Shown: piece by piece, positions 1 to 57,368 of the stretch
How positions within the stretch are numbered: position 1 is the stretch's first letter
Layout: every line of letters begins with the position of its first letter
Assembly (NCBI GenBank): GCA_038087875.1
Contig: CM075978.1
Coordinates: forward strand, 179,986,001 to 180,050,000
Origin: Malacoraja senta
Lineage: Eukaryota
Direction: 5' to 3'
Length of the DNA stretch: 64,000 nucleotides
The notes under the pieces: generated by a model
What the model saw: the letters and a program-made list of their open reading frames with translations, nothing else
Database searches by the model: none
Told to the model about the DNA's origin: nothing
Translations under genes and position numbers: made by a program

Positions 1-84
1 AATCTGACGATGACGAAAGAGATTTTGGCGTAAAAGCAATAATTCCACAAACATTGTTTAATGTTGTGAACACAAATTATAGTT

Positions 85-6855: not shown

Positions 6856-6951
6856 AGTTATTCTTCAGTTTGCAGAATCCGACAATGACAGTCATAATGA
6901 ACAAAAATGCGATTACAACCGCCGAACGGACAGAACTCCAGATGACTGTTT
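6856..6951 (-). CDS. Gene A exon 4, transmembrane ETVIWSSVRSAVVIAFLFIMTVIVGFCKLKNN
   Basis: 96 nt, acceptor aacttgcag, donor CT|GTAAGT, phase 1 in and out; hydrophobic stretch with Arg, then basic stop-transfer residues. Confidence 0.85.
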
Positions 6952-9900
6952 CTGCAAGTTTAGAATGGCAGATACTGAATTCTACTTTGAGCCGACCATT
7001 GTTTGTTTTAAAGAATCTCTTTAGAATTTGGTGATTTGCTATCGCTCATAATTACATGCAAAAAACATTCTGCTTGAATCTGATATTAGAAACAACGTTG
7101 TCCCGAAGAGTGAGAATGAATAAATTGCCATCTGTACCGGATGCCGTAAATTACTTTAAGCGAGTTTAATTTCAGACGAATAAGTAGGGGGGAGGAGGAT
7201 GGGGGTGGAGTGGATATATTTCTTCACTTTTAATTGGAATGCAGCAGCACACAAAGCTCCAACGTCTTAGGGAAGTGCTGATTTGGTTGAGGTCCAAGGC
7301 AAATCTTCTTTCCCTTATGTACAGTATCAAGGTGTACTTTTTCCAGACACGCCTGCAGATCTTAAAGATAATGAGCTACGGTCATTATCATATGGTAAAT
7401 ACGCTATAGTAAGTCCCAGGGCGCCCTGTCCTCTAAAAAACGTTCAGTGATTGGCAATAAATCGCTCCCCATCATCGCCCCCCACATGCAGTTATTATAT
7501 TGAGTGAAACAGCACGGAAACCGGCCCTTGGCCCAGCACGTCTATGCCGATCAAAATACCTCACAATACCAGAATAGGAGTAATTGCTGAAACCCACCAT
7601 ACGGCGCTTGACCAGAAACAAGATATGAAACAGTTCCCTGCTTTAAATCCAAACAGGTTGGAAGGGACGACATTTTTTCTACACAGGATCACAAATCGGG
7701 ATGAATCCACAATGATAGGAATATGAATTCAATAAAGAGCTGCAAGTGGTTGTGTGTGGAGCAAAAATTAAAACCGCCCCCTCTAATTCGTTACCACAAT
7801 TTGAAAACAACAAATTTTGCGCGAATTTTCTGGAGAACTGAGTCGATACTATTTACGAGGATAGTATTATTTGCATTCCAATTTACATGATTTATCATCC
7901 ACAAACACAGAATTGAATCGTAGGTTGCAAAACGTCATAGTGTTTTTAAGTCATACCTTTGAAAACGACGTGGAATTTGCGACTTTGGTGGGAGATATGA
8001 GACACCAGATAAACGTAAATGTTTCCATTCGGCTCCGACTGTGTCACGGGCAATGAAGTAGAAACTGCGTACAGCCCTTCAGTATTTTTCTGTTTAACGT
8101 TATTAGTCTCAGTTCTAACTGCGGTACCATGTTTATGCCATACAAGAGTTCACTCGGGTGAAACTCGGCCGTTTCACAGACGTGAAGGGATAAAGGGAAT
8201 AAAGGCAGTAGTTGTGTGGGAAATAACTGCAGATGCTGGTTTAAACCGAAGATAGACACAAAATGCTGGAGTAACTCAGAGGGACAGGCAACATCTCTGG
8301 ATAGAAGGAATGGATGACATTTCGGGCTGTGACCCTTCTTCAGACAGAGAGAAAGAAGTAGCTTCCGAGCCTATTGCCCCCTGGCTTGTGAGGGGAACTT
8401 TCTGACAATTAGCTGAATTCTAGAACTTTTTTAAAAGAGTCTCCAAAATGAAAGGGATGCACCAATTTTGGGCAGTTCCTAGACATCTGTCAGCAAATTC
8501 AGTAGCAGACACTAAACAATGGATGTAGTATGAGGCTACGGGAGAATGCGTAGTAACGAGCAGACAATGCAAAATATTTCGAGCGAAAATGAATGCCATC
8601 CCTTCACATTTCGACAGTTACCTGAAATAGCGGGTCATTCTGGGACCCGTTAGAGACAGTGTTTACGATGATAGGAATGGCATTTGTCATCCTTTTAAAA
8701 CAAACGTTGTCAATATCAACACACTCAGATGTCAATAATAAGTTATAAAATTATACGGTGTTTCAAGTCATACCTTGGTCAGGTTTGCGAAGGGCGTGCG
8801 TGGCAATGGCGGGTCTTTGGAGGGAGATGTGCATCACCAGACAAATGTAAATATTCCCGTTGGCCTCCGACTGCGTCATGGGTATTGAACTGGAAGCCGT
8901 GTACAGCCCTTCACTATTTTTCTGTTTAATGGTATCAGCCTTAGCTGTAACAGCAACGCTATTTTTATACCATATAACGGTTAGATCACCCGGGTGAAAC
9001 TCGGCCGTTTTACAGACAAGCGTTGTAGCTGCAGATGAATTGCTCTCGGATATCCAGTTAAACTTCAGTGGAGTTGGAAGGGCTGTGGGGCAGAGTGCGA
9101 AAATATCATATTACTGGGATGAAATTAAGCAAAGACAGTAGGAGCATCTGGTTTAGAAATCCACATATTTTACCCGATCCCTTCAAGACAGAAGTTAACG
9201 AATTATTGATATCTGTTACCTCATACAGCGGAGCGCAATAACCGCAGCGGAAAGTTAATTTTGTTTCAACTCAACAAGCGTTCAATGACATGAAATGTGG
9301 AATCTTTTGGAGGTACAATTTATATTGATTTATGCTGGATCGTATTTGAAGGTGTGATGATCTCTTGATTGAAAGCTATTGTTACCTGTTTTGAAAGACA
9401 TCTTATTTGCTATATTTTTAAAATATATTTTCGGCATAATAATATCCATTGAACGTCGTAAATTCAATAAAACGAGCATAAAATTATATGGTTAGCAGTT
9501 TTCACATAATTTCATTGGGCCTTTCTCTCTCTCTCACAAATCGGAACTCTAATATAGAAATATAAATCTTGTGCAATATTATCGGCTATTCTGCTCACTT
9601 TTGTCACTCACCACATACTGTTAGTTCTGACCCTCTTCCTTCTCCCCTAATTTCCCCCTGACGCATGACTACACAGCGATAGTTTCCCGAATCCTGGTAG
9701 GTCGTGTTCAGCAAATCAAAATATCCGCCTGCTCTATTTTTGAAGGTGAATCGCTTTCTGCCATCAGCGTCGCTTTGTATATATTCATTCTCCCCCTGTT
9801 TTCGCCAACGCACTTCGATTCCCGAACTGTCATACGTAAGTGGGATTATGCAGTGAAAGGTGACGTTTGCTCCCTTCAATATAACCTTTCGTTCTGGAAT

Positions 9901-10164
9901 TTGGGTAACGTGGATCGCAGTTTCTTCAGCAGCTGTTGGAAAAACGTTTAAGATTTGGTTAATTATATTCAATGTAGTACCAACTCTTTAGATAATACAT
10001 TGGCATGAAAAACAAAACTAACAAAGACAAATAGAACAAATAGTTTTCACCAGTTAAGCCAGGAATAGTTTGGGATATTTTGGCATTTAGATAAGTCTAT
10101 ACGAGATCGTTCAAGTACCTGTGCAAATAATCACGGAGAGAGACAGAACCAGGACCAGAAACAT
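6856..10164 (-). CDS. Gene A: VJ-C1-TM Ig-superfamily receptor, activating type (TM Arg). Join 10164-10119, 9932-9612, 9082-8774, 6951-6856; cytoplasmic exons unresolved
   Basis: Four exons with GT-AG boundaries, all phase 1, splice into an open frame: signal peptide, V domain, C1 domain and hydrophobic TM containing Arg. Confidence 0.9.
7957..8185 (-). pseudogene. Relic C1-set exon in gene A intron 3
   Basis: Translates to VCETAEFHPSEL / VWHKHG...KQKNTEGLYAVSTSLPVTQSEPNGNIYVYLVSHIS with a frameshift, second Cys changed to Tyr and 5' part missing; keeps donor AG|GTATGA. Confidence 0.85.
8215..8345 (-). mobile_element. Penelope-type tail fragment
   Basis: aaatgctggagtaactcag...cccttcttcagac. 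Confidence 0.6.
8774..9082 (-). CDS. Gene A exon 3, Ig C1-set domain
   Basis: 309 nt, acceptor cccacag, donor AG|GTATGA; [32 protein letters not shown] match C1-set motifs. Confidence 0.93.
9612..9932 (-). CDS. Gene A exon 2, Ig V-set domain with joined J-like strand
   Basis: 321 nt, acceptor ttccaacag, donor TG|GTGAGT; B-strand Cys (TFHC), Trp (VRWRK), [17 protein letters not shown]. Confidence 0.95.
10119..10164 (-). CDS. Gene A exon 1, signal peptide MFLVLVLSLSVIICT
   Basis: ATG at 10164, 46 nt, donor AG|GTACTT, phase 1; hydrophobic leader; 3 differences from the gene B leader. Confidence 0.9.
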
Positions 10165-10251
10165 TGCAGTTTTAACATTCCGAGCAAATCATTCAACTGA
10201 TGCCTCACTACGATATTCACTCTAAGCAATGGTTACTTTGAAATGTGTTGC

Positions 10252-11250: not shown

Positions 11251-12244
11251 GTCAGTCATAACATTCCGAGCATATCGTTCAACTGATGCCTCGTCAGGCG
11301 AGCAATGGTTGCTTTGTTGTACCTCGCAAAGCGTTGCATTGACGTTAGGCGTCACTCTTACGTGTGTAGGTTCCCACTTTTCATTCGTTGGCGAAGGAAC
11401 GGAAAGAAGAATACAACTGCTGCCATACCATAAGCATTTCACAGGACAATAGTCCTAAAAACAAAACGAAATGGATGGATGGGAGATTTACACGAGGAAA
11501 GAGTGCAATACGTTTTTGAAACAGTTGTACAATTCTAGGCTCGGCAGCTGGTGACACGATCGCAATTGTATTTGGGAAACATTAGAAAACCGACTTTGAG
11601 AAATTTCCAAATATCAAAGATTACAACGAGATTGGAGGGATACAAAGAGAAGTTAGGTAGCGATTTTTTTTAAAGTGCAATAATTTAAGTGCGGACGCGC
11701 TGATTCGCCGGACATCTTTTGAGATTCTGCTGTGCTGAGCCAATGCGATTAGAAACGGTCATCGCAGCAGGGTTATCTAAGTACAACGGAGCAGACACGA
11801 CAACTCCGAATAGTAAAGAGGAAAGAAAACAATGGATAAGTGCTTCAATACCACATAGGCATGTGGGTTTGCAAATCTAAAATTAGCATTCTGAGTACTG
11901 TGTTCGCACGAATATGCCCATTACTAATCAGAATGTCAGATGTGACTCCAAATCGTGTACAGTGGAGCCACAAGAGACCGTAGATGCTATAATCTGGATC
12001 AAAACTCAAACTGGAGAAAAAGCTCGACCAGAAACGTCGACGTCCACATATGCTGCCTTACCTGCTCTATTGCTCCATCGGTGTATTTTTTTTAACTCCG
12101 AAGCATGATTTATGCCGTTTCTATTTCCAACATCTATACAAAAGTATTTCTGATCGATGGCTAGGTGACGGAATTGGGAATTGAGGCGAACGACAAATAG
12201 TGCCCTCCACCATAGTTAATCGGGAAAATTTTATTTTCACTCAG

Positions 12245-15200
12245 ATTGCCCGGGGAAATGACAATGAAGCGGCGAAGAGTGCACCTGGTGTCGAGACAAT
12301 AATCTTTCTTGCAATTTCAGCAAGACAAAGGATATAGTAGTTGGCGTCAGGAAGCGAATCGGGTTGCATTGGCGGCGCTGAAGTAGAGATGGTTGAAAGC
12401 TTCAAATTCCTAGGGGTAAATATCACCAACAACTTGTCCTGGACCATCCATATTGAAGTAATGACTAAGAAAGCACACCAACGCCTCTACTTCTTTAGAA
12501 GGCTGAGGAAGTTCAACAAGTCCCCAAAACCTTTCACCAACTTCTGCAGATGTGCGGTAGAATATATGTTATCGGGATGCATCACAGCATGGTTTGCCAA
12601 GACCTCCATCCAAGAAAGCAAGAAATTGCAGAGAATTGTGGTCGCAGCATAGACCATCACACAAAGCAACCTCCCTTCTGACTCTATTTACACCTCACGC
12701 TGCTTCCGGAAGGCTATCAGCATAATCAAGGACGAGTCGCTGCACGGCCAGTCCCACTTTTCCCTTCTCCCAAGGGGAAAAAAGGCATAGAAGTGTGAAA
12801 ACGTACAGGGACAGTTCTTCCCAGCTGTTATCAAGCAACTGAACCATCCTACCAACAACTAGAGAGCAGTCCTGAACTATTTTACTTCGGATTCACGTGA
12901 GTGAGTACGTGAAGAACCCCGCCAGTGCGCCTGCGCGTCATTACGTCAGACGCCTTGACGCAAACGGACGTGAGGAGCAGAGCTCCTCCAGTGGTTTGTA
13001 GTCTTTCAACTACAAGGTAAGTAAAAACTTTTTTCATGTTTTCCAGGTCCGTTTACTGTGGGTCTGTGGGGATTTTCCCACAGACGCCATGGGAAAAAAC
13101 GGGCAGGGGGAAGAGGCGAGCGACTCAGCCGACAGAAAGTCGGGAAAGTCGGGAGTCCGCGGTTAGAGACCAACCGCCTCGAAACCCCGGTACAGTCGCC
13201 AGCGGTGAGCATAGCGACTGTGGACCTGGGGCTGGTGAAAACACAGTCAGCGCCTGTCGGGCAAAAGGCGACGTTTTAATCCCAACGGCCCACGGAGGGA
13301 GTCCCAGGCAATGGAAGTAGCTCCAGGGCTAGATACTGCTTTCGAGCGTATTGCCCAAATAGAAAGCCTTTTACATAGGCTGTTGGAGCAAAGTTCACTC
13401 AGGGAGGAGTGTACTAAAATCCAAGCTGCTGGAAGCAGCTCAACAGCTCCTGGTACAGGGCTAGATACTGCTTTCGAGCGTGTTGCCCAAATAGAAAGCC
13501 TTTTACATAGGCTGCTGGAGCAAAGTTCACTCAGGTGAAATCCAAGCTGCTAGAAGCAGCTCAACAGCACCTGGTACAGGGCTGATGGAATGCACCCTCA
13601 GGGATGAGGAGCGTGCTACGGGTCATGAGATTTCAGACCCCGACTCTGACGGTGAGGCTGTACAAGGCGATGAATGGCAGCTGCCAGATGTTCCACCCCT
13701 GGCAGTAGGATTCACTGCCCCGTCAGGGTCAGGAGAGCCATTAGGAGAAGAACTGGCATCCTTAAATAAATTACTTGGTTTCCCATCAGCTGGAACAGCA
13801 GGAGATGGATGAGACTGCAAGAAAGCAGGACACCCCAAGTAACTGTGGGTTGCTGAAAGCAGCAGCAGTGAACCAAATTATCTGGAATCAGTTGGAGAGA
13901 ATATTAAAGCTGCTGGGTTCTGGAATAACTGCTTTTACCAGAATAGCAGATAACAGCCAAGAGATGACGAAGTTGCATCAGGAAGCACTGGGGTTGCTAT
14001 GCAGCACCCACTTCGAGATCAATTATCTGAGGAAGGTGCTATACGGCCTACTATGAATCCGAAATTTGCAGCACTCTGCAAACCAAGTAATATACAATTA
14101 CCCAACTTACTCTTTGGAGAGGATCTCGGGAGACGTATTAAAGAGTTGGAAGATGAAGCGAAAACAGGATTGATGAAAACATCAATGGTTGCAAAGTCTG
14201 TAAAGAGGAAGTATCCTTTCAGACGTCATACGGATCCTGGACCAGGACCAAGTCGCTCATCAACGCAGGGACGTAGCTGGCGGCCTGCAGCGGGAGTAAG
14301 AACCAGTGGTGGTGCTTCCGGGAGAATCCAGGGATCTCAGAGTACTCAAATGACTCAAGAGGTAGGTGGACCTGGTTCTCATGGGAACATACTAACTGGA
14401 TTAAGTCCAAAAGTTGGAGGCAGATTACGTCTCTTCTATAACAATTGGAAGAAGATTACTTCAGATGTGGTAATTCTGAATAATATACAAGGATTTCGAA
14501 TTGAATTCAATCCAAATTATGATTTGCCTGTCCAGCATGTTCCGAGCAGAACGCTCCACTTTGCAAAGTAATGGAGGTTCAAGCTGCACTTCAAAACCCT
14601 ATATATAAAAGGTGTTATTGAAGAATCAGTCTACCAAATTCACCAATTTGGGTCAAATATATTCCCTCGATCAAAAAAGGATGGAGGATGTAGGATTATT
14701 ATAGACTTGACAAGTCTGAATCCTTTTGTTCAGTGTCTGTTCACTTGGAAGATATGAAGTATCTTAAATGTACATGGATGAACCAGTTAGGGCAAAGCTC
14801 TGCCTAATGGGTTAACGTCCGCTCCCAGAATATTCATAAAATTGTTAAAATCAATTCTGGGGTTGCTGAGAGCCAGGGGCATGTACTAATGGCATACCTG
14901 GATGATGTCCTGATTATAGGAAGGACAAAACAGTCAACAGAAGCATCTGTTGCAGTTATGAAATCAAACTTTTGAAAGTTTGGGGGTTTCTAAATTCATC
15001 CAAAGAAATCAAGGTTAAAAACATGTACCTTGTTTGATTATTTGGGGTTCACAATTGATTCAGCCCAAATGAAAATTACTTTGCCCAGTGAAAAAAGGGT
15101 GGAGTTGATTAAAGATTGCAGTAATCTGTTAAACGAGCAAAAACCTTTAATCAGACAGGTGGCTCGGGTACTGGGAAAATTAGTAGATTCCCAGCAGTCC

Positions 15201-17825
15201 AGTATGGACCATTACATTATCAACAGCTGCAGAGAATCAAAGAACAGGCACTGAGAGTAAATGCTGGTCATTTTGATAGACCATGCAAGTAACAACAAAT
15301 GCTGTTTCTAATCTGCAGTGGTGGATTCTACATGTCTCAAGCAGTTCAGGCAAAGTGCTGATTGAACAACCTTCCATGATATTACAAACTGATGCCAGTG
15401 CACTAGGATGGGGTGCAACTGACTTAACATCTAGCTGCGGAGGCAGATGGAACCAGGAAGAGTTATTGTTACTGCAGACATGGGGAATTCCCTATTTGGA
15501 GCTTTTAGGAGGTTTCTATGGACTCCAAGCTTATTGTTCTAACACAAGTTCAAATTAATAAACACAACAGCAGTTGCCTATATTAATGATATGGGTGGAA
15601 TTAAGTCGGTGTCATGTGACAAAATGGTTAAATCAACTTTGGTCTTGGTGCATTGAAAAGAACATTTGGATTTCAGCTATCTATCTACCAGGTAGAATGA
15701 ACACGATAGCAGACACCAGGTCACGAAAGTTCCATGATAATAAAGAATGGATGTTGAATCAAGAGGTATTCAATGATATAGTAATCAGATTTGGAATGCC
15801 CGACTGACTTAAATCATCAGCTATCGAGATATGTCTCATGGAAACCAGATCCAGGACCAGTGGCGATTGATGCTTTCTCGCTACATTGGGGTGGTATGTT
15901 TTCATATATATTTCCACCTTTCTGCCTCATAAGCCAATGTTTGCTTAAAATCAGGCAAGATGCTGATTCAAGGGTATTGGTAGTACCAGATTGGCCTACA
16001 CAGCCATGGTATCCGTTGATATTAGAATGAACATCACATGATGAAAGTCCCAAAAAGGAGTAATTTATTGCTGCACCTTGTAACAGGGGAACAACATCCA
16101 TTATATGATCATTTGGATTTGTTGCTTTGCAGGTTTTAAGAATGCCTTTTCTGGGACGAGGACTGTCTGAGCGTACTGTGGACATGCTTACGGCAGCCTG
16201 GAGGAAGAGCACTCAAAAACAGTACCTTTCTTATATTAAGAAATGGGAAGAGTTCTGTGTACAAAATAATGTGCAATAAAGTACTGCAGATATTTCAAAT
16301 GTTTAGAATTTCTGTCAAAAGTTTATTATGATGAAGGTCTGAGTTGTAGTGCAATTAATTCAGCCAGAAGTGCATTGTCCTCATATTTGGTTCTGGATTC
16401 AGAAAGAAACCCAGTTGGGTCACACCCAATTGTTTCCAGACTAATGAAAGGAATCTTTAATTCCAAACCACCGAAACCTAGGTACATGACAATCTGTGAT
16501 GTAAGTGTGGTACTGAAACTACTTCGTGAATGGTCATCAAGTGTGTCTTTACCTTAGGCCAAGCTCAGTATGAAAGTATTCATGCTTATGGCATGAGTGA
16601 CAGCACAACGAGTGCAAACACTTGGAAAATTACAAATAGACAGTATGGAAGTAACTGAAGATAAGGTTACATTCTATATCTATGACCTACTAAAGCAAAT
16701 TAGGCCAGGTGTGACAGGATTTAAAATTATGCTAGCAGCATATCCAAATGATCCTTGTCTCTGTATTAGGACATATTTGATACAATACATTGAGGTCACA
16801 AAGAATTTGAGAAGTACGGAAACTGGGTTGTTGATCACACACAAGAAACCACACAAGAGAGTTTCAATACAGACTATTTCCAGATGGATAAAATAAGTCT
16901 TAACAGCTGCTGGTATTAACACTTATGTTTTTATGTCTCACTCGCCGAGGGCAGCAGAGACGTCGGCGGCCAGGGCAAAAGACGTCCCCGTCGACCATAT
17001 CCTTGCAGCCGCCGGGTGGTCCAATGAGTTGATGTTTCAACATTTTTACCATCGGCCTATTGTTAATGCGGGATTGTTTGCAGAAACTATTTTAAGTTCT
17101 GTGTAAATTCCTCTGGTTTAAAGGGGATCTGATTAATTTAATTATTGAAATGAATTACTGCATTTGTGGTACAAATGTTATTATGAATGCATGATTGATT
17201 ATTTCTCGTTCCGAGTCAATCAATGCAGTGAGAAGCCGGGATTGATCTACGGCATGAAATCACAAAGCTTTAAAATCTTCACGTAGTCACTCACGTGACT
17301 CCGAAGTAAAATAGTAAGATTAAACGAGAACTTACCTAAGTTTGAAGTTTGATATTTATTTTATGAGGAGTTACGTAGGTGATTACGTGCCCGCCACGAC
17401 CCTACCCTCTATCATAAAGGTCAGATGGAAGTTGTTGTATTACTCATTTTATTATGAGACTATATTACTTCGGTTGTTGTTTTTTGTGCGCCGCTGCTTT
17501 GAAGATTGAGGCACAGGCGCACTGGTGGGGTTCTTCACGTAATCACCTACGTAACTCCTCATAAAATAAAGATCAAACTTCAAACTTAGGTAAGTTCTCG
17601 TTTAATCTTACTATTATCTACCTCATTGGAGATCCTTGGACAATCTTTGATCGGACTTTACTGGATTAATCTTGCACTAAACGTTATTCACGTTATTCCC
17701 ATTATCATGTATCCGTACACTGCTCGATTGTAATCATGTATTGTCTTTCCGCTGACTGGTTAGCACGCAACAAAAGCTTTTCACTGTACCTCAGTACAGG
17801 TGACAATAAACTAACCTAAATCTCA
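12245..17825 (+). mobile_element. Rex1/Babar-like LINE 3' fragment split by a DIRS insertion (12245-12879 plus 17614-17825)
   Basis: VEMVESFKFLGVNITNNLSW...RLYFFRRLRKF; the flanks rejoin as cctgaacta|ttatctacctcattgg; tail gtgacaataaa. Confidence 0.75.
12880..17613 (+). mobile_element. DIRS1-type tyrosine-recombinase retrotransposon, full length, ORFs degenerate
   Basis: RT YLDD (14895-14906), RNase H LQTDASALGWG, MT-like FPPF/VPDWPTQPWY, recombinase TAQRVQTL/HSPR/AGWS/FY; inverted termini and internal complementary region at about 17277-17389. Confidence 0.93.
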
Positions 17826-17899
17826 AACTCAAACAAAGCCATGAAGGGTGCGAAGAAACAAATCGAGACCAAGCTAGAATCCCAGAATAACTGCGCAGT

Positions 17900-18700: not shown

Positions 18701-18799
18701 TATTCGCACCATACTTCAGCCCAGTCTTCATAAGTTCATAGGTCATGGGAGCAGAGATAAGCCATTCGAACTTTGAGTATACTCCGCCATTCATTCTTG

Positions 18800-43895: not shown

Positions 43896-46800
43896 AGATA
43901 AGCTGGAGAAATCCAGTGACTGCTGTGAAAATGCAGCTGACAACTAGGGAAAGACCATGTGATGGCGTGGAAAGACAGCTGTCAGGAGGAAAAGACCCCA
44001 ACGGGGTTAGCATGGACTAGCTATCCATGACGGCTGGCTCCGTCACTGTGAATTGTGAATAGGAGTCACCCCTCATGGCAACGAAAAATTTAAAGAGGAA
44101 AATACCCCCTGAGTCTGCGAGAGAGGGGGTGGAAGTTGACTCATCGGATGACAACCCGGTAACCGACCCTTGCATGAACACGATGACGAAGAAGATAATC
44201 GGCATGGCACTTACAACATCAGCTGCAGGACAAGAACTCCAAGAGTGTCGCTGTGGCTGGTCCAAGGTAACATCGATCAGAGGCCTATAAATACATCAAG
44301 GGCGGATGAAGTGCTTGAAGGAGGTGAGGCCTGGACCTCGCATTGATCAGTATCTCCTGAGAGAAAGATCAAATCAGTCGAGTGAAGCTCAGCGGCAGGA
44401 TACAACCCAGTCCAACGAGCATCAATACCCCAGTGGCTAAGGAGAATAATTCAAGCACAACATCTGAGAACCCGGAATCCAGCCAGACGCAGCCTGCTTT
44501 GGAGAAGAAGATGCAAGGCCACAGACATCATGTGAAGTGGCCAAAGTCCAGCAGCAAGAAAGAGTGGGCAACAATCGACGCAGACCTGAGTAAGATCCTA
44601 GACGGACTTCACGGAACAGTGGAGAAGAAACTGGAGAAAATGAGTGATCTGATCTACTTCTACGGGGCAGAAAGGTTCAGAACCAAAAAGAAGGAAACAA
44701 CAACCCCTCCAAAGCTCAGAAGGCAGCGAGAAATCGAGCGCCTAATCAAAGAGAGAAGGGACCCGAGGTAATGGTGGAGGAAATCCTCACTGGAGGAAAG
44801 AGTGGGCATCAACCTCCTGCAAGCAGATCTAATGGAATGCCTGGGAAGACTACGGAGAGCAGAAACCCTCAGAATTCAACGCAAGAAGAAGGAGAGGGCA
44901 AGAACATCATTCTACAAGCATCCCTTCAGATTTGTGAAAGGACTCTTCACAAAGGAAAAGACTGGGTCACTTAAGGTGTCAAAGAGGGAATTGGAGGACC
45001 ATCTGAAATCAACGTACACAGACTACCAAAGATTTGAGCAGAGGGGGATACTTCCAGACATGCCACCCATTCCTCAACCGGAACACCAGTTGGACAACAG
45101 CCTCCCAAGGTGCAGCGAAGTCGAGAAAGCCGTAAGGAAGGCAAGGGCAGCTTCAGCTCCAGGACCAAACGGAGTTTCATAACGGCTGTACAAAAATGCT
45201 CCAAATGTTCTAAGGTTCCTATGGAAGCAAATGAAGGTAGCATGGAAAAAGCAAACCATCCCAAAAGCATGGCGAATAGCAAGGGGAGTGGTGATCCCCA
45301 AGGAAAAAGATGCCTCAAACATCGACCAATACCGGCAAATCAATCTCTTGGATGTTGAAGAGAAGATCTTCTTTAGCATTGTTGCTCAAAGGATGATAAC
45401 CTACCTGAAACAGAACAACTTGATTGACACGTCAGTACAGAAAGCTGATATACCAGGCTAGTCTGGATCCTTAGAACACACAAGCATGATATGGCATCAA
45501 ATCCAGTCAGCAAGAAGGGAATGAAGAGATCTGCACGTCTTATTCCTGGAACTAATCAATGCTTTTGGATCTGTTCCCCATTGTCTCCTCTGGACAGCCT
45601 TCGAGTTCTTCCATGTGCCAAAGAACATTGCAAACCTGGTCAAGATTTACAATTCTGTATTACAACAACAGAATAGACAACATCATGGCAATCACTGGAA
45701 GTGGGAATAATGGCAGGTTGCACCGTCTCCCCGCTAGCCTTCACCATGGCGATGGAAGTGATCATCTGAGCTTCCAAGTGGGTCGTAGGAGGAGAGCGGC
45801 TGCAGTCTGGGCAGCGGCTACCTACCATTCGCGCCTACATGGATGACATGACCACCCTGACCTCAACCATTGCATGCACCAAGCGCCTGCTGGAAAAGCT
45901 TCATGCGAAATGACATGGGACCGGTTGAAGTTGAAACCCAGCAAATCCAGGAGCATATCCATCATCAGAGGAAAAATCGTAGACAAGCGATTCCACAATG
46001 ATGAAACACCCATTCCGATGGTATCAGAGCTGTCAGTAAAGAGTTTAAGACGGTGGTACAATGCAAGCCTCAAAGACTCAGACCAGTGTGACCAACTGAG
46101 GGAAAAAAACATCAAAGGCCTTACTATCATAGACAAGACCTCGCTTCCTGGTAAGCAGAAACTGTGGTGCCTGCAGTTTGGCTTGCTCCCCCATCTGATG
46201 TGGCCTCTGACCATCTACGAGGTCCCCATCACCAAAGTCGAAAAGTTGGAGAGGACAGTCAGTTCATACATCAAGAAGTGGCTTGGACTCCCGTGTTGCC
46301 TCAGCAATATCGGCTTGTTTGGACACAGCGCTCTGGAACTGGAAGTCTCTAGCCTCATAGAAGAATACAAATGCACCAAAGTGAGGCTGGACATGATCCT
46401 GGCCGAATGTCAAGATGATGCGGTATGAGCGGCTGCTCCCAGACTGGCAACTGGGCGGAAGTGGACCCCATTGGAGGCTGTACAGCAAGCAAAATCTGCT
46501 CTCAGGCATGGAGACATTGTAGGACAGGTGCAGCAGGGAAGAGGTGGGATTGGACTCGGGACAAGTCGACCCACATGGTACAAGGCAACATCCACCCAGA
46601 GAAGAAAGCTGGTAGTTGCTGAGGCCCGTCAGCAAGAGGAGGCAGAGAGATGCGCAAAGGCAGTCCCACAGTCCAAACCGGGCGAGTGGACTACCTGGTA
46701 AAACCTGGAGCATCGTAAGCTTACCTGGAATGATCTGTGGGAAATGGGAAGAAGCTGTCTTAGCTTCATCATCAGAGCCACCTACGATGTTCTTCCCACA

Positions 46801-47727
46801 CCCAGGAAACCAACCCAGTGGCTTGGAGAAGATTCATTATGTTCTCTCTGTCAAACCCCAGCAACATTAAGGCACATCCCCACTGGCTGCAAAACCAGTC
46901 TTTCACAAGGCCGCTACACCTGGAGGCACAATCAGGTCCTGTGACAACTGGCGATTACCTTGGAAGGAAGGAGAACTACCACGAATGGCCTCCCTCCCCC
47001 AACGCCTGGTTTCTCGAACACCACCCCTTTTGGAAAGGCAGGGCAACTTCCAGGGAAGCCATTTGCAAGAAGGGAACCGATCCTCCTGGACATTGCCCGG
47101 GACAGGAAAATGCAGGCTGATCTAGACCAGAAGCTCATCTTTCCACCAGAGATCATCACAACTAATCTCAGGCCGGACCTGATCTTGTGGTCAACCTCAC
47201 CGAAGTCCCTGTACATCGTGGAGTTAACTGTGCCTTGGGAGGTTGCAGTTGGTGAAGCGCATGAACGCAAATGTCTGAAATATTCAGACTTAGCAGCCGA
47301 GGCAGAACAACGCGGCTGGCGTACCCCAGGTGCTCCCTGTAGAGGTTGGTTGTAGAGGGTTTGTAGCCATGTCAACAACCAGACTCCTGAAGGGAATGGG
47401 AGTTCGAGGACAGGCCTTCCGGCAAGCCGTCAGGTCGCTATCAGAGGCTGCGAGCGAAGCAGCAACTGGCTTGTGGCTGAAGAGGAAGGACTCGTATTGG
47501 GCTGCAAAATGACCAGCAAGAGGGGTAAAACAGAGGGGAGCGCACCTGGGACGCCAGGTGTTGCTGTTGTGCTCTCTGGGGGTGTCCTGGGCATATCAAC
47601 CAAATACCAAGGAAGGAGGGTGCCCACCTGATGATCCCAATTAAGTCTTTACCCCTACCCCCACTCAAGATATTAAGAAGGCACCAATTGTAGTAGGGAT
47701 TGCAATATCAAGTCCTATAAGCTCAAC
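43896..47727 (+). mobile_element. Hero-type non-LTR element, copy 2, near full length, degenerate ORF
   Basis: N-terminal Cys/His motif (CRCGW...IHQGRMKC), RT (AYMDDMT), CSLC...RHNQVL, RPDLILWS...ELTVPWE...KYSDL; 3' end identical in layout to copy 1. Confidence 0.88.
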
Positions 47728-48872
47728 TCCATGTCAATACTCTACCACCAATACCATGTGCTCTAATTTTGCACACTAAACTCTTGTGTGAGTCCTTGTC
47801 TTTTTGAAAGTCCAGATACACCACATCCACTCGCTCTCCCTTATCCATTCTACTTGTCATATCCTCGACAAAATCCAAAAGATTAGTCAAACATTATATC
47901 CCCTTCATAAATCCATGCTGACTTTGATCGATCCTGTCACTGCTTTCCAAATGTGCTGCTGTTACACCTTTAATAATCGACTCAAGCATCTTCCCCACTA
48001 CCTGGCATATAATTCCCCATTTTCTCTCTCTCTCCTTTCTTAAAACGTGGAGTTATGTTAGCTACCCTCCAGTCCACGGGAACGGATCCAGAGTCTATCG
48101 AACACTGGAAAATGATCACCAATGCATCCATGATTTTTAGGGCCACCTCCTTGAGTATGGGATGCAGACCATCTGGCCCTGGGAGAATAAAGAGGGAAGA
48201 TTAGACTTTATTGCCTTCCATCACAGTGAGGAATGTAGGGAATCCCCTGTGGTGGATGTATATGTTGACTTTTATGTAGTTGTGTGTCTTGTTCCTTTTT
48301 CTAGTATGGCTGTATGGTAAACCGAGTTTCACTGTACATTAATTGGTACTCGTGACCATAAAATACATTTGAAACCTTTGAAACCTTTTATCTGCCTTTA
48401 GTCCCAACAGTTTACATCACACCATTTCCTCACTAATGTGGATTCCCTTCAGTTCCTCCCTCCCGCTAGATCCTCAGTCTCCCAGTATATCTCCAGTATT
48501 TAAGAAACTTGATCAAGGCATCCTTGGGCTCACAGATATTCTCGCATTCCATGACTATCCACGCAATTAAAATCTAAAATTATGCAAATAAAACCACTAA
48601 ATGCGATTCTTCCCGATAGCTGTCGAAAGCTGAAGTAGACTCTACTCGGTGTTAAATTTGACATCTAGATGAGCAGTGGACAATATCGGTGTCAACAGCA
48701 ACAAAATCTGAATCTTGATCGCAGCACCGATTCTTCCTCTGCTTTAATGGCCCTGATGCATTCGGCTATGACGTTCTTTTACCTTTTAGTTCTACTATTC
48801 GGACTTGTCATTTCCATCTGTTGTTGTACTTGGATATAGTTGTGATGATGGCAATATATTGTATAACCCCAT

Positions 48873-49457: not shown

Positions 49458-49503
49458 ATGTTTCTGGTCCCGATTCTGTCTCTCTCCATGATTATTTGCA
49501 CAG
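49458..49503 (+). CDS. Gene B exon 1, signal peptide [15 protein letters not shown]
   Basis: ATG at 49458, donor AG|GTACTT, phase 1. Confidence 0.9.
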
Positions 49504-52500
49504 GTACTTGAACGATCTCATATAGACTTATCTAAATGCCGAAATATCCAAAACTATTCCTGGCTTAACTGATGAAATCTATTTGTTCTATTTGTCTGTT
49601 AGTTTTGTTTTTCATGCCAATGTATTATCAAAAGAGTTGGTTCTACGTTGAATATAATTAACCAAATCTTAAACGTTTTTCCAACAGCTGCTGAAGAAAC
49701 TGCGATCCACGTTACCCAAATTCCAGAACGAAAGGTTATATTGAAGGGAGCAAACGTCACCTTTCACTGCATAATCCCACTTACGTATGACATTTCGGGA
49801 ATCGAAGTGCGTTGGCGAAAACAGGGGGAGAATGAATATATACAAAGCGACGCTGGTGGCAGAAAGCGATTCAGCGTCAAAAATAGAGCAGGCGGATATT
49901 TTGATTTGCTGAACACGACCTACCAGGATTCGGGAAACTATCGCTGTATAGTAATGCGTCAGGGGGAAATTAGGGGAGAAGGAAGAGGGTCAGAACTAAC
50001 AGTATGTGGTGAGTGACAAAAGTGAGCAGAATACCTGAGAATATTGCACAAGATTTATATTTCTATATTAGAGTTCCGATTTCTGAGAGAGAAGGGCCCA
50101 ATGAAATTATGTGAAAACCCATACAATTTGATGCTCGTTTTAGTGAATGTACAACGTTCAATATTATTATGCCGAAAATATATGTTAAAAATACAGCAAA
50201 TAAGATGTATTTCAAAACAGGTAACAATAGCTTTCAATCAAGAGATCGTCACACCTTCAAATACGATCCAGCATAAATCACTATAAATTGCACCTCCAAA
50301 AGATTCCACGTTTCATGTCATTGAACACTGGTTGAGTTGAAACAGAATTAACTTTCCGCGGCGGTTCTTGCGCTCCGCTGTATGATGTGACAGATATCAA
50401 TAATTCGTTAACTTCTGTCTTGAAGGGACCGGGTAAAATAGGTGGATTTCTAAACAAGCTGGGACTGGCAGAGGTTTGCTTCCTTCTCCTACTGTCTTTG
50501 TTTAATTTCATCCCAGTAATATGATATTTTCGTACTCTGCCCCACAGCCCTTCCAACTCCACTGAAGCTTAACTGGATATCCGAGAGCAATTCATCTGCA
50601 GCTACAACGCTTGTCTGTAAAACGGCTGAGTTTCACCCGGGTGATCTAACCGTTATATGGTATAAAAATAGCGTTGCTGTTACAACTAAGGCTGATACCA
50701 TTAAACAGAAAAATAGTGAAGGGCTGTACACGGCTTCCAGTTCAATACCCATGACGCAGTCGGAGGCCAACGGGAATATTTACATTTGTCTGGTGATGCA
50801 CATCTCCCTCCAAAGACCCGCCATTGCCACGCACGCCCTTCGCAAACCTGACCAAGGTATGACTTGAAACACCGTATAATTTTAAACTTATTATTGAATG
50901 CGTTTCTTGATGTTGACAAAGTCNNNNNNNNNNNNNNNNNNNNNNNNNNNNNNNNNNNNNNNNNNNNNNNNNNNNNNNNNNNNNNNNNNNNNNNNNNNNN
51001 NNNNNNNNNNNNNNNNNNNNNNNNNNNNNNNNNNNNNNNNNNNNNNNNNNNNNNNNNNNNNNNNNTCTATTCTAACGGGTCCCAGAAAAACTCATTATTT
51101 CTGGTAACTCTGGAAGTATGAATATGAGATGGAAGGGATGGTATTTATTTTCCCTCTAAACATTTTGCGTCGTTTGCTCATTCTCCCGAGGCTTCATACT
51201 AAATTTATTGTTTAGTTTACATTGCCGGATTTCGTGACAGATGTCGAGGAACGTTACGTCGTTTCTTTGTTCTGGAGCCTACCCCTAAAATAGTGCATCT
51301 CTTTCATTTCGGAGATTCCAGAATTGAGTTGTCAGGATGTTTCCTTTCCAAGCCATGGGCAATGGGCTCGGAAGCTCCCTCCTTTATTTTACACGGCCTC
51401 ATCCTTTTCACTAATATCGTACTAAATTATGGATTCACAGAAATAATGGCAATGTATATTTATATAACTGGAAGGTACACAAAAATGCTGGAGAAACTCA
51501 GCGGGTGCAGCAGCATCTATGGAGCGAAGGAAATAGGCGACGTTTCGGGCCGAAACCCTTCTTCAGACTGATAGGGGGTGGGGAACAAAAAGGAAAAAAG
51601 GAAAAAGGCGGAGGAGGAGCCCGAGGGCTGGGGGAGGGGAGGAGACAACCAGAGGGCTGATGAAGGGGAGGGGACAGCAAGGGCTAGCAGAATTGGGAGA
51701 ATTCAATGTTCAAGCCCCCAGGATGTAGACTGCCCAAGCGGAATATGAGGTGCATTTCCTCCAATTTACGGTGTTGCTCGCTGTGGCCATGGAGGAGACC
51801 CAGGACAGAGAGGTCAGATACGGAATGGGAGGGGGAGTTGAAGTGCTGAGCCACCGGGAGGTCAGGTTGGTTATCCCCGGATGCTCGAGAAAATGTGTTT
51901 TCCGCCTTCAATAATCGTTGCAATCTCTGTGTGAATGGACAACATATGTGGAACTGTGGCTATGATGGTGGAGTGCGAAATGTGCCTACTTTCATTACCC
52001 TCGCTGATGAAAGTAGCCGGTTTGGTAGTTACTGTCGAACTAATCTTGGCGAGCCCTCTATTTTTATCTGCTTCACACGCACTATCGCGATGCAGGATCT
52101 AATAAACAATAACATAAGCATGGTCTGAAGAAGGGTCGAAACGAAATGAAAGGGTCGAAACGAAGGGTTGACCCGAAACGTCGCCCATTCCTTCTTTCCA
52201 GAGATGCTGCCTGTCCCACTGAGTTACTCCAGCATTTTGTGTCTAACTTCGATTAAAACCAGCATCTGCAGTTCTTTCCTACACAATAAAATGAGCATGA
52301 TGTACTGATCCTTGCTACTGCAGATCAGCGAAGGATATTAAATATAGTGTTTTACTCAATTCAAGCGAATTGTTGGTCAGAGTATGGGGCGCCATAGTTT
52401 ATTCTATTGCCAAGCCAAGTCAAGTAAAAGAAACATTACTCCCTTCCAGCAATACGTATTCACCTGTCTTTAAATAATGCTCAGTACACCGGAGACTGAT

Positions 52501-55500
52501 ACGGTGCAAATTATTCACGGCACGCAAATTACTCAGGTCGCATGTTACATTTTGCCAGAAAAAATAATTACGGATGTCAGAATAAAAAATACTTTAAAAA
52601 TTAAATGCAAATGTGATTATCTTTTTACAGTTATCTCGCGCTATTCCGTGTAGTTATCGTAAGCTTATAAATCAGTTCAGTCACAAGTAATTCAAATAAC
52701 TATTCTTTTAACGTATCAAAAGTACCCAAAGTGGAATTCATTATTTTTCCTCATCTTTCAGAACTCGATAACAAATATTTCTATATCTGGGCTTCTGGAA
52801 GCGCGGTCGGTGGAATCGGCATTTTGGTGTTTGTATTTATCATTGTCCTGAGGTGCCGTTCGACAAATAAAAGCAAGTATTATGCTCACCGATGTGTTTT
52901 CTGAGAACCTAGACAACACCGCAGATAATGAATACAATTTCTAAATGATAGAGCTGCTATGCAATTTTGCAGGAATTCGAATTGCACCGGACATGACCGG
53001 TAATTCAGTATTTATAATTTAATAGTGATCACAGAAGAAATAAATATAAATATTATTCTGCTTATTTGCAAGAGTATGTTTCAATTTTACATATGGAAAA
53101 GCGAAATCTAGATACATTTCAGGTGCAACTGGTTTGAGCAGGATGGTATTAGTGCCCAGTCGAGAGGAAATAGCGGATGCTTGGCGGGCTCACATTTTTA
53201 ACTTAAATATGATATGTCAAAATAATTTCCAACCACAAATGCAAACTTTATGCTGTTCATTAAGGAATTGTAGAGAACTATCCTCATTTGCTACACATGA
53301 AAATCCAATTCTCACCATGATCTCTTATTGATAAACTTTCTAACATTGTTTCAAAACTTCCCATTTGGTTGAATCTGCAAGAGTCCTCCAATTACCCACC
53401 TCCCCCCGCCACAGTTCATTCAAAACTTTTCTCGATACGATAAGGAACGACACATTATAGACAAGGGCAATCGCAATCGCAATCGAAGTCAAAGGGGATA
53501 GTATTTAGACGCAGCAGTGTGAAGCGTTGTGAACACCTTTTTTCGAAAAGATATTTGAAGTAAAATCTCATGTGACGGATGCAGTATAGATCTCAATGTA
53601 ATCGTTGGATTATGACATGCTGAATAACACGTTAATGTTGCTTAGATATATAATCTTGTAGTTTTATCTGATTTAAAATAAATAATGTAGTAATCGCACA
53701 AAAATATCGTTGAATATTAAGAAACGTGGAAACTAGAGGGAGACAGAAAGGCCTGGATAGAGGGGATGTGTAGAGGATGTATCCACTTGTGGGAGAGTCT
53801 AGGACCAGAGACCATAGCCTCGGACTAAAATGACGTACATTTAGAAAGAAAGGGAGGAGGAATTTCTGCAGTCAGGATGGTGAATCCGTGGAAGTCATTG
53901 CCACAGAAGACTATGAAGGCCAAGTGAATGGATATGTTTAATGGCGGAGAGTGATAGATTCTTGATTAGTACGGGTGTCAAAGGTTATGGGGAGAAAGCA
54001 GGAGAATGGGGTTGAGAGGGAAAGACAGGTTAGCCATAATTGAATGGCGGAGTAGACTTGATCGGGCGAATGGCTTAATTCTGCTCTTATAATGTATTAA
54101 TATATGAACAGTAAACGCTGCATTTGCGTGTGACAGTTGCATTCTGCATTTGAAGTAAGATAACGTTTCTCACTTAAATAACGCCTGTCTTAAATAACTC
54201 AATTATTCACGAGTTTATATTAAATTAATCATATCATACTAGAAACATAATATTGTGTTTCCTCTCTCCGTGAAATTCATTGTCCTCGTTAAAGAAAGAA
54301 CGGTTCTTATAATTGCACCAACCCTCAAAGTCTTGCATCGTTTAACGATGTTCTCGGATATGAATTTAACCCGAATTTCAATGAATGAAATCATCCTTTG
54401 ATATTGCTTGATGCTTTGGATGGGCAATTTCATTGAAGAGTCCGCGAAGCTCCAAAAATGCTCTTCGTCACTTTTACAATTCACAATGTTCATGCATATA
54501 CATAATCGAATATATGTGTGACTGTGTGCATTGCCCGTCATTTTTGCTGAATGGATAGCACATTGGCTCCATGGAAGGAAGCAGAGGGTGATAGTGGAAG
54601 GTTTCTTCTCAGAATGGAGGCCAGTGACTAGTGGTGTGCCACAGGGTTCGGTGCTGGGCCCGTTATTGTTTGTCATCTACATCAATGATTTTGGAGAACA
54701 TACAGGGCCAGATTAGCAAGTTTGCTGATGATACAAAAGTTAGCGGTTTTGCAGCAGGATCTGGATCGATTGGAATTTATTCTTGATGGAATTTAATACA
54801 GAGAAGTGTGAGGTGTTACATTTTGGGACGTCGAACAAGGGCATGACATACACGGTAAATGGTAGGCCTCTGGCTAGTGTTGTAGAGCAGAGGGATCTAG
54901 GAGTACAAGTGCATGGTTCCTTGAAGGTCGAGTCACAAGTAGATAAGGTGGTCAAAAAGGCTTTTGCCACTGGCCTTCATCAGTCAGAGTATTGAGTATA
55001 GAAGTTGGGAGGTCATGTTGCAGTTGTATAAGAAGTTGGTGAGACCGCATTTAGAATATTGTATTCAGTTCTTGGCACCATATTATAGAAAAGATATTGT
55101 CAAGCTTGAAAGGGTTCAGAAAAGATTTACGAGGATGTTGCCAGGACTAAAGGGTGTGAGCTATAGGGAGAGGTTAAGCAGTCTGGGTCTCTATTCCATG
55201 GAGCGTAGGAGGATGAGGGGAGATAGAGGTATATAAAATCATGAGAGGAATAGATCGGGTAGATGCACATTCTTTTACCCAGAGTAGGGGAATCGAGCAT
55301 CCGAGGACGTAGGTTCAAGGTGAAGGGGAAAAGATTTAATAGGAATCCCAGGGGTAACTTTTTCACACAGAGGGTGGTGGGTGTATGGAACAAGCTGCCA
55401 GAGGAGGTCATTGAGGCGGGGACTATCCCATCGTTTAAGAAACAGTTGGACAGGTAACTGGATAGGATAGGTTTGGAGGGTTATGGATCAAGCGCAGACA

Positions 55501-57368
55501 AGTGGTAGCTGGAACATTATTGGCCAGTGTGGACGAGTTGGGCCGAAGGGCCTGTTTCCACAGTGTATCACTCTATGACTGTATGACTATTTAATCTCAT
55601 TGCTCATCGCTTTCCCTGCATACAATGATAGTCTCTTGTTTTACTGTTACCATAAAAAAAGTATTAATAGGACACGGGAAAATGTTTTACCGTTATTTAT
55701 AATTTAATTTCATTAACTTTTAGAGCCAAGAAGTACCGGGGGCCATGAAGAATCGGTATGCATTTATGTATATATACATATATATTACATTTGAGAAAAC
55801 GGTTGAAGCATCTATAAATAAAGTTGTAAAACAAGTATTCTGTCAGAACTATTTCGCAAAAGTATCAATCGCTATCGCGGATCTGTTAAATTGGGTTTAA
55901 CATTAATTTGACGGCAGTTGCGACGTTTGTGTAAGTGGTTATAGGAAGAGACAAATTAAATTGATTAATTAATTCCGCATATACGTAAATAATAACTACA
56001 TTCATCGATCCAAGTTACGTTTGAACTCAGTAATTCCACCTAGTGATGCTGAATGACAGTGAAACCCATCAAGTTTAAGTTCAGTAGATAAATTCTACTT
56101 AAAACCCATACAGGTCTTCTAGTTTTAGATTTATAAACTATATCTTTTGTATGTGTTTGGAATTTACTCCATTGCGCTTACTGGCAAATGCGCAAACAAC
56201 GATAATGGCACGTGCAGTCATGTAAATTATTTTCTTTCTGATCCATGCAGGTTGAAGCGAACAACACCCTGACTTATTCTGCTGTAGATATGAGCAATTC
56301 CAAAAGGAAATTGAGACAGAAAAGCGAAGAGGAGACAGCCTATGCACGAGTAAGATTTTGCAGCACATAAAGAAAACATAGAACGCGGCGCAGAAAATAG
56401 GTGTAAAAGAGCCATATCCTAATATCATAAATCATGAGACATAGAGCCCATCGAGTCTGCTCTGTCATTGGATCATGGCTGATTTATTTTTCCCACTCAA
56501 CCTCATTCTGCTGCCATATCTCCGTAATCTTTGACAACCTTACTAATCAAGAATATTGTTAAATCTTTGCTTAGAAAATATCCAATAAATTGTCCGCCAC
56601 TTCCGTCAATGAATCTTCTATCCAAGAATCAAGAGTCAATAATGTTTTATTGTCATATGTCCCACCCAGGCTAGTACCTTGCCTCTAACACCATGAACTC
56701 CTATCTTGTTCAGCAGCTTCATGTGGGTCCTGAAAATCCAAGTAAACGTGGTCCATGGTCTCTCCTTTGTCCATCTCCCCTTAAAACTATGCTGACTTCG
56801 GCCTGTTTGACAATATTTTAAGTACCCCGAAACCTCATCATTCGTAATGTACACTAATATCAGACCAACCACTGAATGTCTGGGATTATAGGCACAAGTG
56901 ACTGCAGATGCTGGAATCCTGTCCAAAAAACCCGAAGCTTTTTGCATCCGAGGAAGGAAAAATCAGGTGCCATTTTAATCCAAAGAAGGGTCGAGATCCA
57001 TCACATAGTTTCTTATTTTTCTTCCACAGATGTTGCCAGGCCTACAGTGTTCGTTCCTCCGGCACGTTGTCTATTTACTCAATATCTGCGTTTGTCCCAA
57101 CGTTGGTAGTGTGGCGCGTCTAAAGTTGTTCCGATGTTTTTGATATCTGACTTGATCCGCAGGCCACAAAGTGGTTCAACAATGACATATTTTGCAACCG
57201 TTGGTTTTTCAGGTAAAACAAGGGGCCGCCCGGGAAGTACTTACATACGCATCTGTGGAATTGTCTCAACCCGGGAATGCTGGTAAAGTTAAAGCCAGGG
57301 ATAAGATCACGGAATATGCAGCGCTGCAGACGGCAAATCCACGAAGAGTAAAAGAAGACGGAAAGTAA
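49458..57368 (+). CDS. Gene B: VJ-C1-TM Ig-superfamily receptor, inhibitory type (SIRPalpha-like tail), 366 aa. Join 49458-49503, 49688-50008, 50548-50856, 52762-52872, 52973-52999, 55724-55755, 56251-56349, 57213-57368
   Basis: Exon lengths 46+321+309+111+27+32+99+156 = 1101 nt give one open frame ending in TAA; all acceptors AG, donors GT except one GC. Confidence 0.85.
49688..50008 (+). CDS. Gene B exon 2, Ig V-set domain with joined J-like strand
   Basis: Same motifs as gene A; 6 nt differences in 321. Confidence 0.95.
50548..50856 (+). CDS. Gene B exon 3, Ig C1-set domain
   Basis: [10 protein letters not shown]...[20 protein letters not shown]...[10 protein letters not shown]...PDQ; 3 nt differences from gene A in 309. 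Confidence 0.93.
50924..51064. other. Assembly gap (141 N) in gene B intron 3
   Basis: Run of N. Confidence 1.
51470..51880 (-). mobile_element. Penelope-like fragment
   Basis: [17 protein letters not shown]...[24 protein letters not shown]. Confidence 0.8.
52762..52872 (+). CDS. Gene B exon 4, uncharged transmembrane [37 protein letters not shown]
   Basis: Acceptor tcatctttcag; GC donor AA|GCAAGTATTATGCT aligns with the gene A donor CT|GTAAGTATTATGCT. Confidence 0.85.
52973..52999 (+). CDS. Gene B exon 5 (27 nt, RIRIAPDMT)
   Basis: Acceptor ttttgcag, donor CG|GTAATT, phase 1 to 1. Confidence 0.7.
53720..54090 (+). mobile_element. CR1 3' fragment in a gene B intron
   Basis: gagtctaggaccagag...ggttatggggagaaagcagg...gaatggc 3' UTR. 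Confidence 0.75.
54530..55590 (+). mobile_element. CR1 3' fragment in a gene B intron (sense)
   Basis: [24 protein letters not shown], (ctatgact) tail. Confidence 0.88.
55724..55755 (+). CDS. Gene B exon 6 (32 nt, [11 protein letters not shown])
   Basis: Acceptor taacttttag, donor CG|GTATGC; supplies the phase 1-to-0 change needed to read the ITIM exons. Confidence 0.7.
56251..56349 (+). CDS. Gene B exon 7, ITIM plus ITSM: [33 protein letters not shown]
   Basis: Acceptor ttctttctgatccatgcag, donor GA|GTAAGA, 99 nt, phase 0 to 0. Confidence 0.85.
57213..57368 (+). CDS. Gene B terminal exon, ITIM plus ITSM-like: [51 protein letters not shown]
   Basis: Acceptor ggtttttcag, phase 0, stop TAA at 57366-57368. 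Confidence 0.85.
   Translation, partial: VKQGAAREVLTYASVELSQPGNAGKVKARDKITEYAALQTANPRRVKEDGK

Follow-up and report, generated by a model that had tools for sequence, protein, structure and literature searches.

A divergent pair of V(J)-C1 receptor genes in a skate, with a homogenised ectodomain and opposite predicted signalling ends

A stretch of 64,000 nucleotides from the skate Malacoraja senta (assembly GCA_038087875.1, contig CM075978.1, forward-strand positions 179,986,001 to 180,050,000; hereafter "the window," in which positions are counted from the first letter) carries two genes in head-to-head orientation, transcribed divergently: gene A on the minus strand at 6856-10164 and gene B on the plus strand at 49458-57368. 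We read them as a pair of activating and inhibitory receptors, in which gene conversion maintains a shared ectodomain in front of opposite signalling exons, and put the probability of this reading at roughly 0.7. Each gene is modelled from its sequence as a leader, a V domain encoded together with a J-like motif in one exon, one C1-set exon and a transmembrane (TM) exon. The V exons of the two genes are identical at 315 of 321 nucleotides (98.1%, six differences) and the C1 exons at 306 of 309 (99.0%, three differences), which bears out an earlier note on this DNA that had described divergent genes with V and C1 exons 98-99% identical; the introns are 94-96% identical, the ectodomains about 97% identical as protein, and the TM exons about 60% identical.

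The genes occupy the arms of an inverted repeat (8707-10971 paired with 48525-50919, in blocks 93-99% identical), each arm holding the 5′ half of one gene, and the splice sites of both models are AG/GT with matching phases, the sole exception being the donor of the gene B TM exon. Orthologues of both genes are carried head-to-head by the little skate, Leucoraja erinacea, on opposite strands of CM054023.1, where 17,845 bp separate the two start codons, and the window and the L. erinacea loci are 90-92% identical along their length. The orthologue of gene A (P0158; XP_055505063.1) is a protein model of 228 residues named "tapasin-related protein-like"; that of gene B (P0169; XP_055504649.1) is fully modelled at 355 residues, bears the name "novel immune-type receptor 1d" and is about 90% identical to our gene B model, whose tail exons it confirmed and whose 32-nt exon it supplied. 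For the gene A and gene B proteins of the window themselves, no entry was found in two close-relative searches of the protein collection.

Informative sites in a four-sequence alignment (A and B from both skates) were counted in 200-nt bins according to whether they group the sequences by species or by orthology. Across a tract that opens about 40 nt ahead of the start codon and closes with the C1 exon, 29-31 sites group by species and a single one by orthology; on the 5′ side of the tract the corresponding counts are 2 and 34, and on its 3′ side 1-2 and 4-5, the bin that spans this edge giving 2 and 5. The alignment indicates that a 1.45-kb tract of leader, V and C1 is homogenised independently in each skate lineage, and that the TM and tail exons are not. 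Since the flanks follow orthology, the duplication that gave rise to A and B predates the divergence of the two skates. Homogenised ectodomains with divergent signalling parts are described for paired opposing receptors (PMC3210942), and their combination with opposite signalling is a hallmark of such receptors (PMC3210942, PMC3533184).

The signalling ends themselves proved to be largely what the earlier note had claimed, namely a TM arginine with no inhibitory motif in gene A and a neutral TM segment with four tyrosine motifs in gene B. The gene B product is 357 residues long, and its 95-residue tail consists of two repeated units, each with an immunoreceptor tyrosine-based inhibitory motif (ITIM) followed by a tyrosine like that of an immunoreceptor tyrosine-based switch motif (ITSM); the key positions of the four motifs (Table 1) are kept in P0169. 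The tail had been assigned to four small exons, and we count three beyond the TM exon. The TM sequence of gene A is VIWSSVRSAVVIAFLFIMTVIVGF, with its arginine kept in L. erinacea; should the GTAAGT donor at the end of the TM exon remain unused, the frame extends 22 codons to a TAA at 6788-6790 and contains no Tyr-x-x-Leu/Val motif. Queries made of the gene B tail exons and the tails of eight relatives found no tail exon at E 1 or better in positions 1-6855 of the window, and in the 10 kb past the L. erinacea orthologue they gave only a 12-residue chance match. An ITIM tail hidden downstream of gene A is thereby ruled out within 6.85 kb here and 10 kb in L. erinacea, in agreement with the earlier note, which saw no ITIM in gene A. 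The signalling halves are not unrelated, as had been supposed: the TM exons of A and B are reciprocal best matches within the window and have their splice phases in common, the intron that follows starts with GTAAGTATTATGCTTA in A and GCAAGTATTATGCTCA in B (14 of 16 positions identical), and the introns upstream of the two exons share CAAAGTRGAATTCA. We take the two TM exons to be diverged homologues.

As paired receptors, the two old paralogues would encode type I membrane proteins with an outer part like one antigen-receptor chain. Gene B would be inhibitory, its phosphorylated ITIM/ITSM units recruiting SH2 phosphatases of the SHP-1/SHP-2 type, as established receptor biology suggests; gene A would be activating, since a short, motif-free tail combined with a TM arginine would need an adaptor with an acidic TM segment and an immunoreceptor tyrosine-based activation motif (ITAM), of the FcR-gamma, CD3-zeta or DAP12 type. 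An arginine in the outer third of the TM helix is typical of receptors that partner FcR-gamma or CD3-zeta. Repeated conversion between the inverted copies keeps leader, V and C1 near-identical within a species, so that both receptors should see the same ligand as that ligand changes, and they may compete for it; outside the conversion tract, the TM and tail exons retain their opposite signalling ends.

Several points weigh against this interpretation. Transcription and splicing of both genes in M. senta are predicted from sequence, and the adaptor and phosphatase partners of A and B are putative. The donor of the gene B TM exon reads GCAAGT here and GTAAGT at the same site in L. erinacea; the change (52872/52873) could be fixed, a polymorphism or a base-call error, and a GC donor with A at position -1 is weaker than the GT of L. 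erinacea, so that splicing of the tail might be less efficient. Between the two skates the ratio of nonsynonymous to synonymous substitution rates (dN/dS) of gene B is about 1.1 in the ectodomain, 0.7 in the tail and 0.9 overall, which fits a fast-evolving immune receptor, yet relaxed constraint is also compatible with it. The sole public model of the gene A orthologue skips the TM exon, making a secreted product possible, and the gene A TM exon ends in a perfect GTAAGT donor, making a further exon beyond 6.85-10 kb possible.

The alternative that survives best, although we consider it unlikely, is an inhibitory receptor accompanied by a soluble decoy: read-through of the C1 donor would make the product of gene A mainly or only a secreted V-C1 protein, with the TM exon a decaying leftover, and this protein would compete in solution for the ligand of the membrane-bound inhibitory receptor. 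The NCBI model P0158 does end four codons into intron 3 (...GQGMT-stop), and so without the TM exon; the same GMT-stop read-through past the C1 donor exists in both genes of the window, and several members of the wider family in the database have no TM segment. However, the gene A TM exon is identical in L. erinacea at 94 of 96 positions (97.9%) against about 92% in the adjacent intron, a level of conservation reached by just 1.7% of non-coding 96-nt windows, and its frame, its arginine and both splice sites are kept in the two species, whereas a neighbouring C1 exon relic drifts at the intron rate (91.4% identity to L. erinacea). Elsewhere in the family, forms with a TM arginine are modelled as full proteins (P0157, P0159, P0015), and truncated models are a common pipeline artefact. 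No conserved poly(A) signal follows the read-through stop of gene A, an ATTAAA about 40 nt past the stop in the window not being kept in L. erinacea.

We regard it as improbable that one or both genes are young pseudogenes, with gene B cut from its tail by the GC donor and conversion continuing among dying copies. An overall dN/dS of about 0.9, the GT-to-GC change and the decayed exon fragments around both genes would suit this explanation, but complete frames and all splice sites are kept in both genes in two species about 8% apart. The frames of gene B are intact in both skates (355-357 codons) with one in-frame indel, the introns having many; the coding DNA of B (about 1.07 kb) and of A (about 0.77 kb) is free of frameshifts, and the twelve key positions of the four gene B tyrosine motifs are unchanged between the skates. 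GC-AG introns in which AAGT follows are usually functional, which also counts against loss of the tail. Intact frames, splice sites and motif positions, together with the sparse coding indels, point to function.

That two haplotypes, or a collapsed tandem copy, were joined in inverted orientation beside the assembly gap in gene B is hardly credible: the right repeat arm ends 1-4 nt before the gap, but the same divergent pair is present in the separately made assembly of another species, the sequence beside each arm is orthologous to that of its own counterpart (34:2 sites on the 5′ side), the TM and tail regions differ between the genes and each have their own orthologue, and concerted evolution limited to the ectodomain itself rules out a haplotype mis-join. 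The gap is the only run of N in the window (142 N; G+C of the window 42%), and its two sides, 49256-50922 and 51066-51465, match L. erinacea L002 at 9800-11427 and 11544-11925 in the same order and orientation, the corresponding interval measuring 116 nt there; neither an exon nor a reading frame crosses it. By the collinear flanks and the head-to-head pair in L. erinacea, the arms are not wrongly joined haplotypes, a possibility that the earlier note had raised.

The ectodomain exons were compared with domain models and known structures. The first Ig exon passes the Pfam Ig_3 model (34.6 bits) among other Ig models, and its V-set score is 30.4 in gene A and 26.2 in gene B, the latter right at the 26-bit cut-off. 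A J-type motif, G-x-G-S-x-L-x-V (GRGSELTV), ends the V exon, which splices directly to C1; because the motif is germline-encoded within the V exon, rearrangement is not needed to join V and J. The C1 exon has the hallmark Y-x-C-x-V-x-H, and its matches among PDB sequences include constant domains of Ig heavy chains as well as the first C domain of UrIg2 (9dmx, E 7.5e-16); the V exon gives weak, generic matches. Intron 3 of gene A contains the relic of a second C1 exon mentioned above, in which the 5′ third is replaced by a repeat, the acceptor is missing and the second cysteine has become tyrosine, and which is frameshifted here and in frame in L. erinacea. A second C1 domain for gene A is ruled out by the missing acceptor, the frameshift, the lost cysteine and the intron-rate drift; the relic may be the remnant of a V-C1-C1 ancestor, or of a partial tandem duplication.

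An exhaustive HMMER search with the V exon revealed a family of single-V proteins of 220-400 residues, and every relative whose source was checked comes from a cartilaginous fish. Members are found in skates and rays (Leucoraja, Pristis, Mobula, Hemitrygon, Hypanus, Narcine), in sharks (Heterodontus, Heptranchias, Scyliorhinus, Mustelus, Chiloscyllium, Hemiscyllium, Rhincodon, Cetorhinus, Carcharodon) and in the chimaera Callorhinchus; three word-indexed searches, one of which scored the best 8000 candidates, and the exhaustive HMMER search gave no relatives outside Chondrichthyes. We sorted 70-odd members by TM segment and tail into three classes. The first has a neutral TM segment and one to five motifs of ITIM/ITSM type. 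The second has an arginine near the outer TM end and a short, motif-free tail (P0157 of S. canicula, P0159 of Mustelus, P0015 of Hypanus), the arginine of P0157 and P0159 being at the place equivalent to that of gene A. The third, from sharks and chimaera (P0029, P0058, P0061, P0071, P0081, P0129, P0166), has a TM helix with arginine at its outer end and (Asp/Glu)-His at its inner end, and a short tail; this arrangement hints at a further, undescribed use of adaptors.

On a tree of the ectodomains, the forms with an ITIM tail and those with a TM arginine interleave, and at least six changes of the TM-Arg state are required by branches with good support. Near-identical ectodomains with different signalling ends include the pairs P0027/P0030 and P0164/P0015; forms of the third class often adjoin an ITIM form, and in Callorhinchus P0161 (ITIM) and P0166 (third class) are identical over the tree columns used. 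This interleaving suggests that the paired design is a habit of the whole family and not peculiar to the locus described here. The proposal of the earlier note, a cartilaginous-fish paired-receptor system built on a V(J)-C1 scaffold, is strengthened by the pair in a second skate, by homogenisation confined to the ectodomain and by the recurrence of both forms across the family. The domain content of the family varies: P0006, P0012, P0063 and P0073 (Callorhinchus, Narcine, Mobula) run from V to TM to an ITIM tail without a C1 domain, and the relative P0027 has two C1 domains.

The nearest functional counterpart is the SIRP-alpha/SIRP-beta1 pair of mammals and birds, in which a V domain with a J-like motif is likewise followed by C1-set sequence, the ectodomains are kept similar, and an inhibitory member with a four-tyrosine, two-unit tail stands opposite a partner with a basic TM residue and a short tail; the two-unit, four-tyrosine tail of gene B resembles that of SIRP-alpha. 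An AlphaFold model of P0169 has two confident beta-sandwich Ig domains and a TM helix, and its best Foldseek matches in Swiss-Prot are SIRP-alpha of human, cattle and rat (E of about 1e-17 to 1e-15, the top at 2e-17), by a small margin over PD-L1/2, B7-H6, TCR beta and tapasin-related protein. Against PDB structures the same model finds Ig light chains first, at about 25% identity, and in a comparison of the family profile with PDB sequences the IgA heavy chain, UrIg2 and others come ahead of SIRP-alpha, which is fifth (1.9e-30), SIRP-gamma also scoring high. SIRPs differ from the skate pair in having two C1 domains, where each skate gene has one intact C1 exon, and a TM lysine in place of arginine; in sequence the pair is no more similar to SIRP than it is to Ig heavy chains or UrIg2, and no bony-vertebrate homologue was found by sequence search. 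As we interpret it, the family would work like SIRP-alpha/SIRP-beta, yet it falls outside SIRP as defined by three domains (V and two C1-set).

Other known systems share parts of the design. The NITRs of bony fish resemble the skate genes in a germline V with a J motif, in large multigene families with ITIM-tailed and charged-TM members, and in the functional niche of a candidate receptor of natural killer (NK) type. NITRs are a bony-fish family with V, or V plus an I-type domain, and no C1-set domain; as NITRs are usually defined, the skate pair lies outside them, its second domain being C1-set and its checked relatives being cartilaginous fish. UrIg and UrIg2 are likewise non-rearranging, with a single-exon VJ followed by C1-type domains, and confined to cartilaginous fish; UrIg2, crystallised as a V-C1-C2-C3 chain, forms Fc-like dimers linked by disulfides, and the paper describing it mentions neither ITIMs nor SIRPs (PMC12227049). 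At an E-value threshold of 0.01 the V exon has no match to the V domain of UrIg2, and membership in UrIg/UrIg2 is ruled out by this domain and by the V-C1-TM-tail architecture. Ig light chains and TCR chains have the same two-domain V(J)-C1 fold, whereas the skate genes have V and J in one exon and ITIM or charged-TM ends of their own; with the J-like motif inside the V exon, they are not rearranging antigen receptor genes, although no scan for recombination signal sequences was made. Opposite signalling on near-identical, conversion-kept ectodomains is also described for KIR, LILR/PIR, Ly49, NKG2 and CEACAM1/3 (PMC3210942, PMC5112662). These have C2/I-set Ig or C-type lectin domains, and in none is there a V(J)-C1 module.

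The pair is apparently an undescribed addition to the class of paired receptors, not a new kind of system, and the gene models of its relatives are already public. A full-text search found no description of the family, but key papers related to UrIg and PRARP lay outside its coverage, and an earlier description is possible. Paired receptors of opposite signal are central to the control of mammalian NK and myeloid cells, and are thought to have been shaped by arms races with pathogens. Of the living lineages that have Ig, TCR and MHC, cartilaginous fish are the oldest, and neither the KIR, LILR and Ly49 families of mammals nor the NITRs of bony fish are known from them. We suggest, tentatively, that the family could be the long-missing germline-encoded recognition of NK or myeloid type in sharks, rays and chimaeras, a membrane-bound, non-rearranging V(J)-C1 chain that has served for paired inhibition and activation since the base of the jawed vertebrates and is maybe sister to the ancestor of SIRP. 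The locus presents the full design in well-delimited form, since the conversion tract stops immediately 3′ of the ectodomain exons and the opposite signalling exons lie outside it; it offers testable candidates for innate recognition in sharks and skates, and brings a membrane-bound relative into the debate on VJ-C1 genes that do not rearrange, such as UrIg, NKp30 and SIRP.

Public annotation scatters this one family under at least ten automatic names, mostly unrelated, among them SIRP-alpha-like, SIRP-beta1-like, SIRP-gamma-like, tapasin-related, NCR3LG1-like, Ig lambda-like, TCR beta-like, CD276 homolog and NITR 1d; many members are SIRP-alpha-like or SIRP-beta1-like by their NCBI pipeline names. 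The under-annotation that the earlier note expected from the small tail exons and the GC donor was found in part: the gene B orthologue is fully modelled in spite of its small exons, and the gene A orthologue has only a truncated V-C1 model; the GC donor is particular to this species, L. erinacea having GT.

Table 1. Features of the window, with positions counted from its first letter
Feature	Position	Strand	Evidence and remarks
Gene A leader exon	10119..10164	-	MFLVLVLSLSVIICT; ATG; AG/GTACTT donor, phase 1; leader-V intron 186 nt
Gene A V(J) exon	9612..9932	-	Pfam Ig_3 and V-set; splice sites; J-like GRGSELTV inside exon
Gene A C1-set exon	8774..9082	-	Pfam C1-set, E 8.6e-14; YICLVMH hallmark
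Relic of second C1 exon, gene A intron 3	7965..8185	-	78% identical to C1 exon
Gene A TM exon	6856..6951	-	Arg in outer third of helix; GTAAGT donor follows at 6855
Gene-conversion tract of gene A, leader to C1 end	8770..10200	-	partner in gene B about 49420-50860
Gene B leader exon	49458..49503	+	splice model
Gene B V(J) exon	49688..50008	+	splice model; Pfam; match to gene A V exon
Gene B C1-set exon	50548..50856	+	splice model; Pfam; match to gene A C1 exon
Assembly gap, intron 3 of gene B	50924..51065		67 nt past C1 exon; flanks collinear with L. erinacea
Gene B TM exon	52762..52872	+	uncharged helix; GC donor AAA/GCAAGT
Gene B cyt1 exon	55724..55755	+	32 nt; phase 1 to 0; located via P0169
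Gene B cyt2 exon	56251..56349	+	99 nt; LTYSAV (ITIM), TAYARV (ITSM-like)
Gene B cyt3 exon	57213..57368	+	156 nt; LTYASV (ITIM), TEYAAL; stop 57366-57368
Spacer between the two 5′ ends	12000..48500		retrotransposon debris; RVT_1 and integrase matches
Reverse-transcriptase/integrase open reading frame remnants	25680-26396, 28489-29037, 34443-35123, 41285-41872, 39742-40977		in spacer

The 5′ ends of genes A and B are 39 kb apart, against a spacer of 17.8 kb in L. erinacea, and a scan of the ten longest open reading frames of the spacer gave only remnants of reverse transcriptase and integrase and no further gene. Upstream of both genes there are decayed fragments of a further leader and of a V exon, from its 5′ end (HVIQIPERVVILMG...), at 10949-11008 and 11201-11292 on the minus strand and 48525-48598 on the plus strand; these fragments sit inside or beside the repeat arms and have counterparts in L. 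erinacea at L001 8518-8802. Within gene B, in the intron between the TM exon and cyt1, an open reading frame at 54522-55454 has a translation that looks by eye like a reverse transcriptase. A short interspersed repeat recurs in either orientation within and near both genes (51471-51874, 63117-63493, 8212-8345 and 52172-52286).

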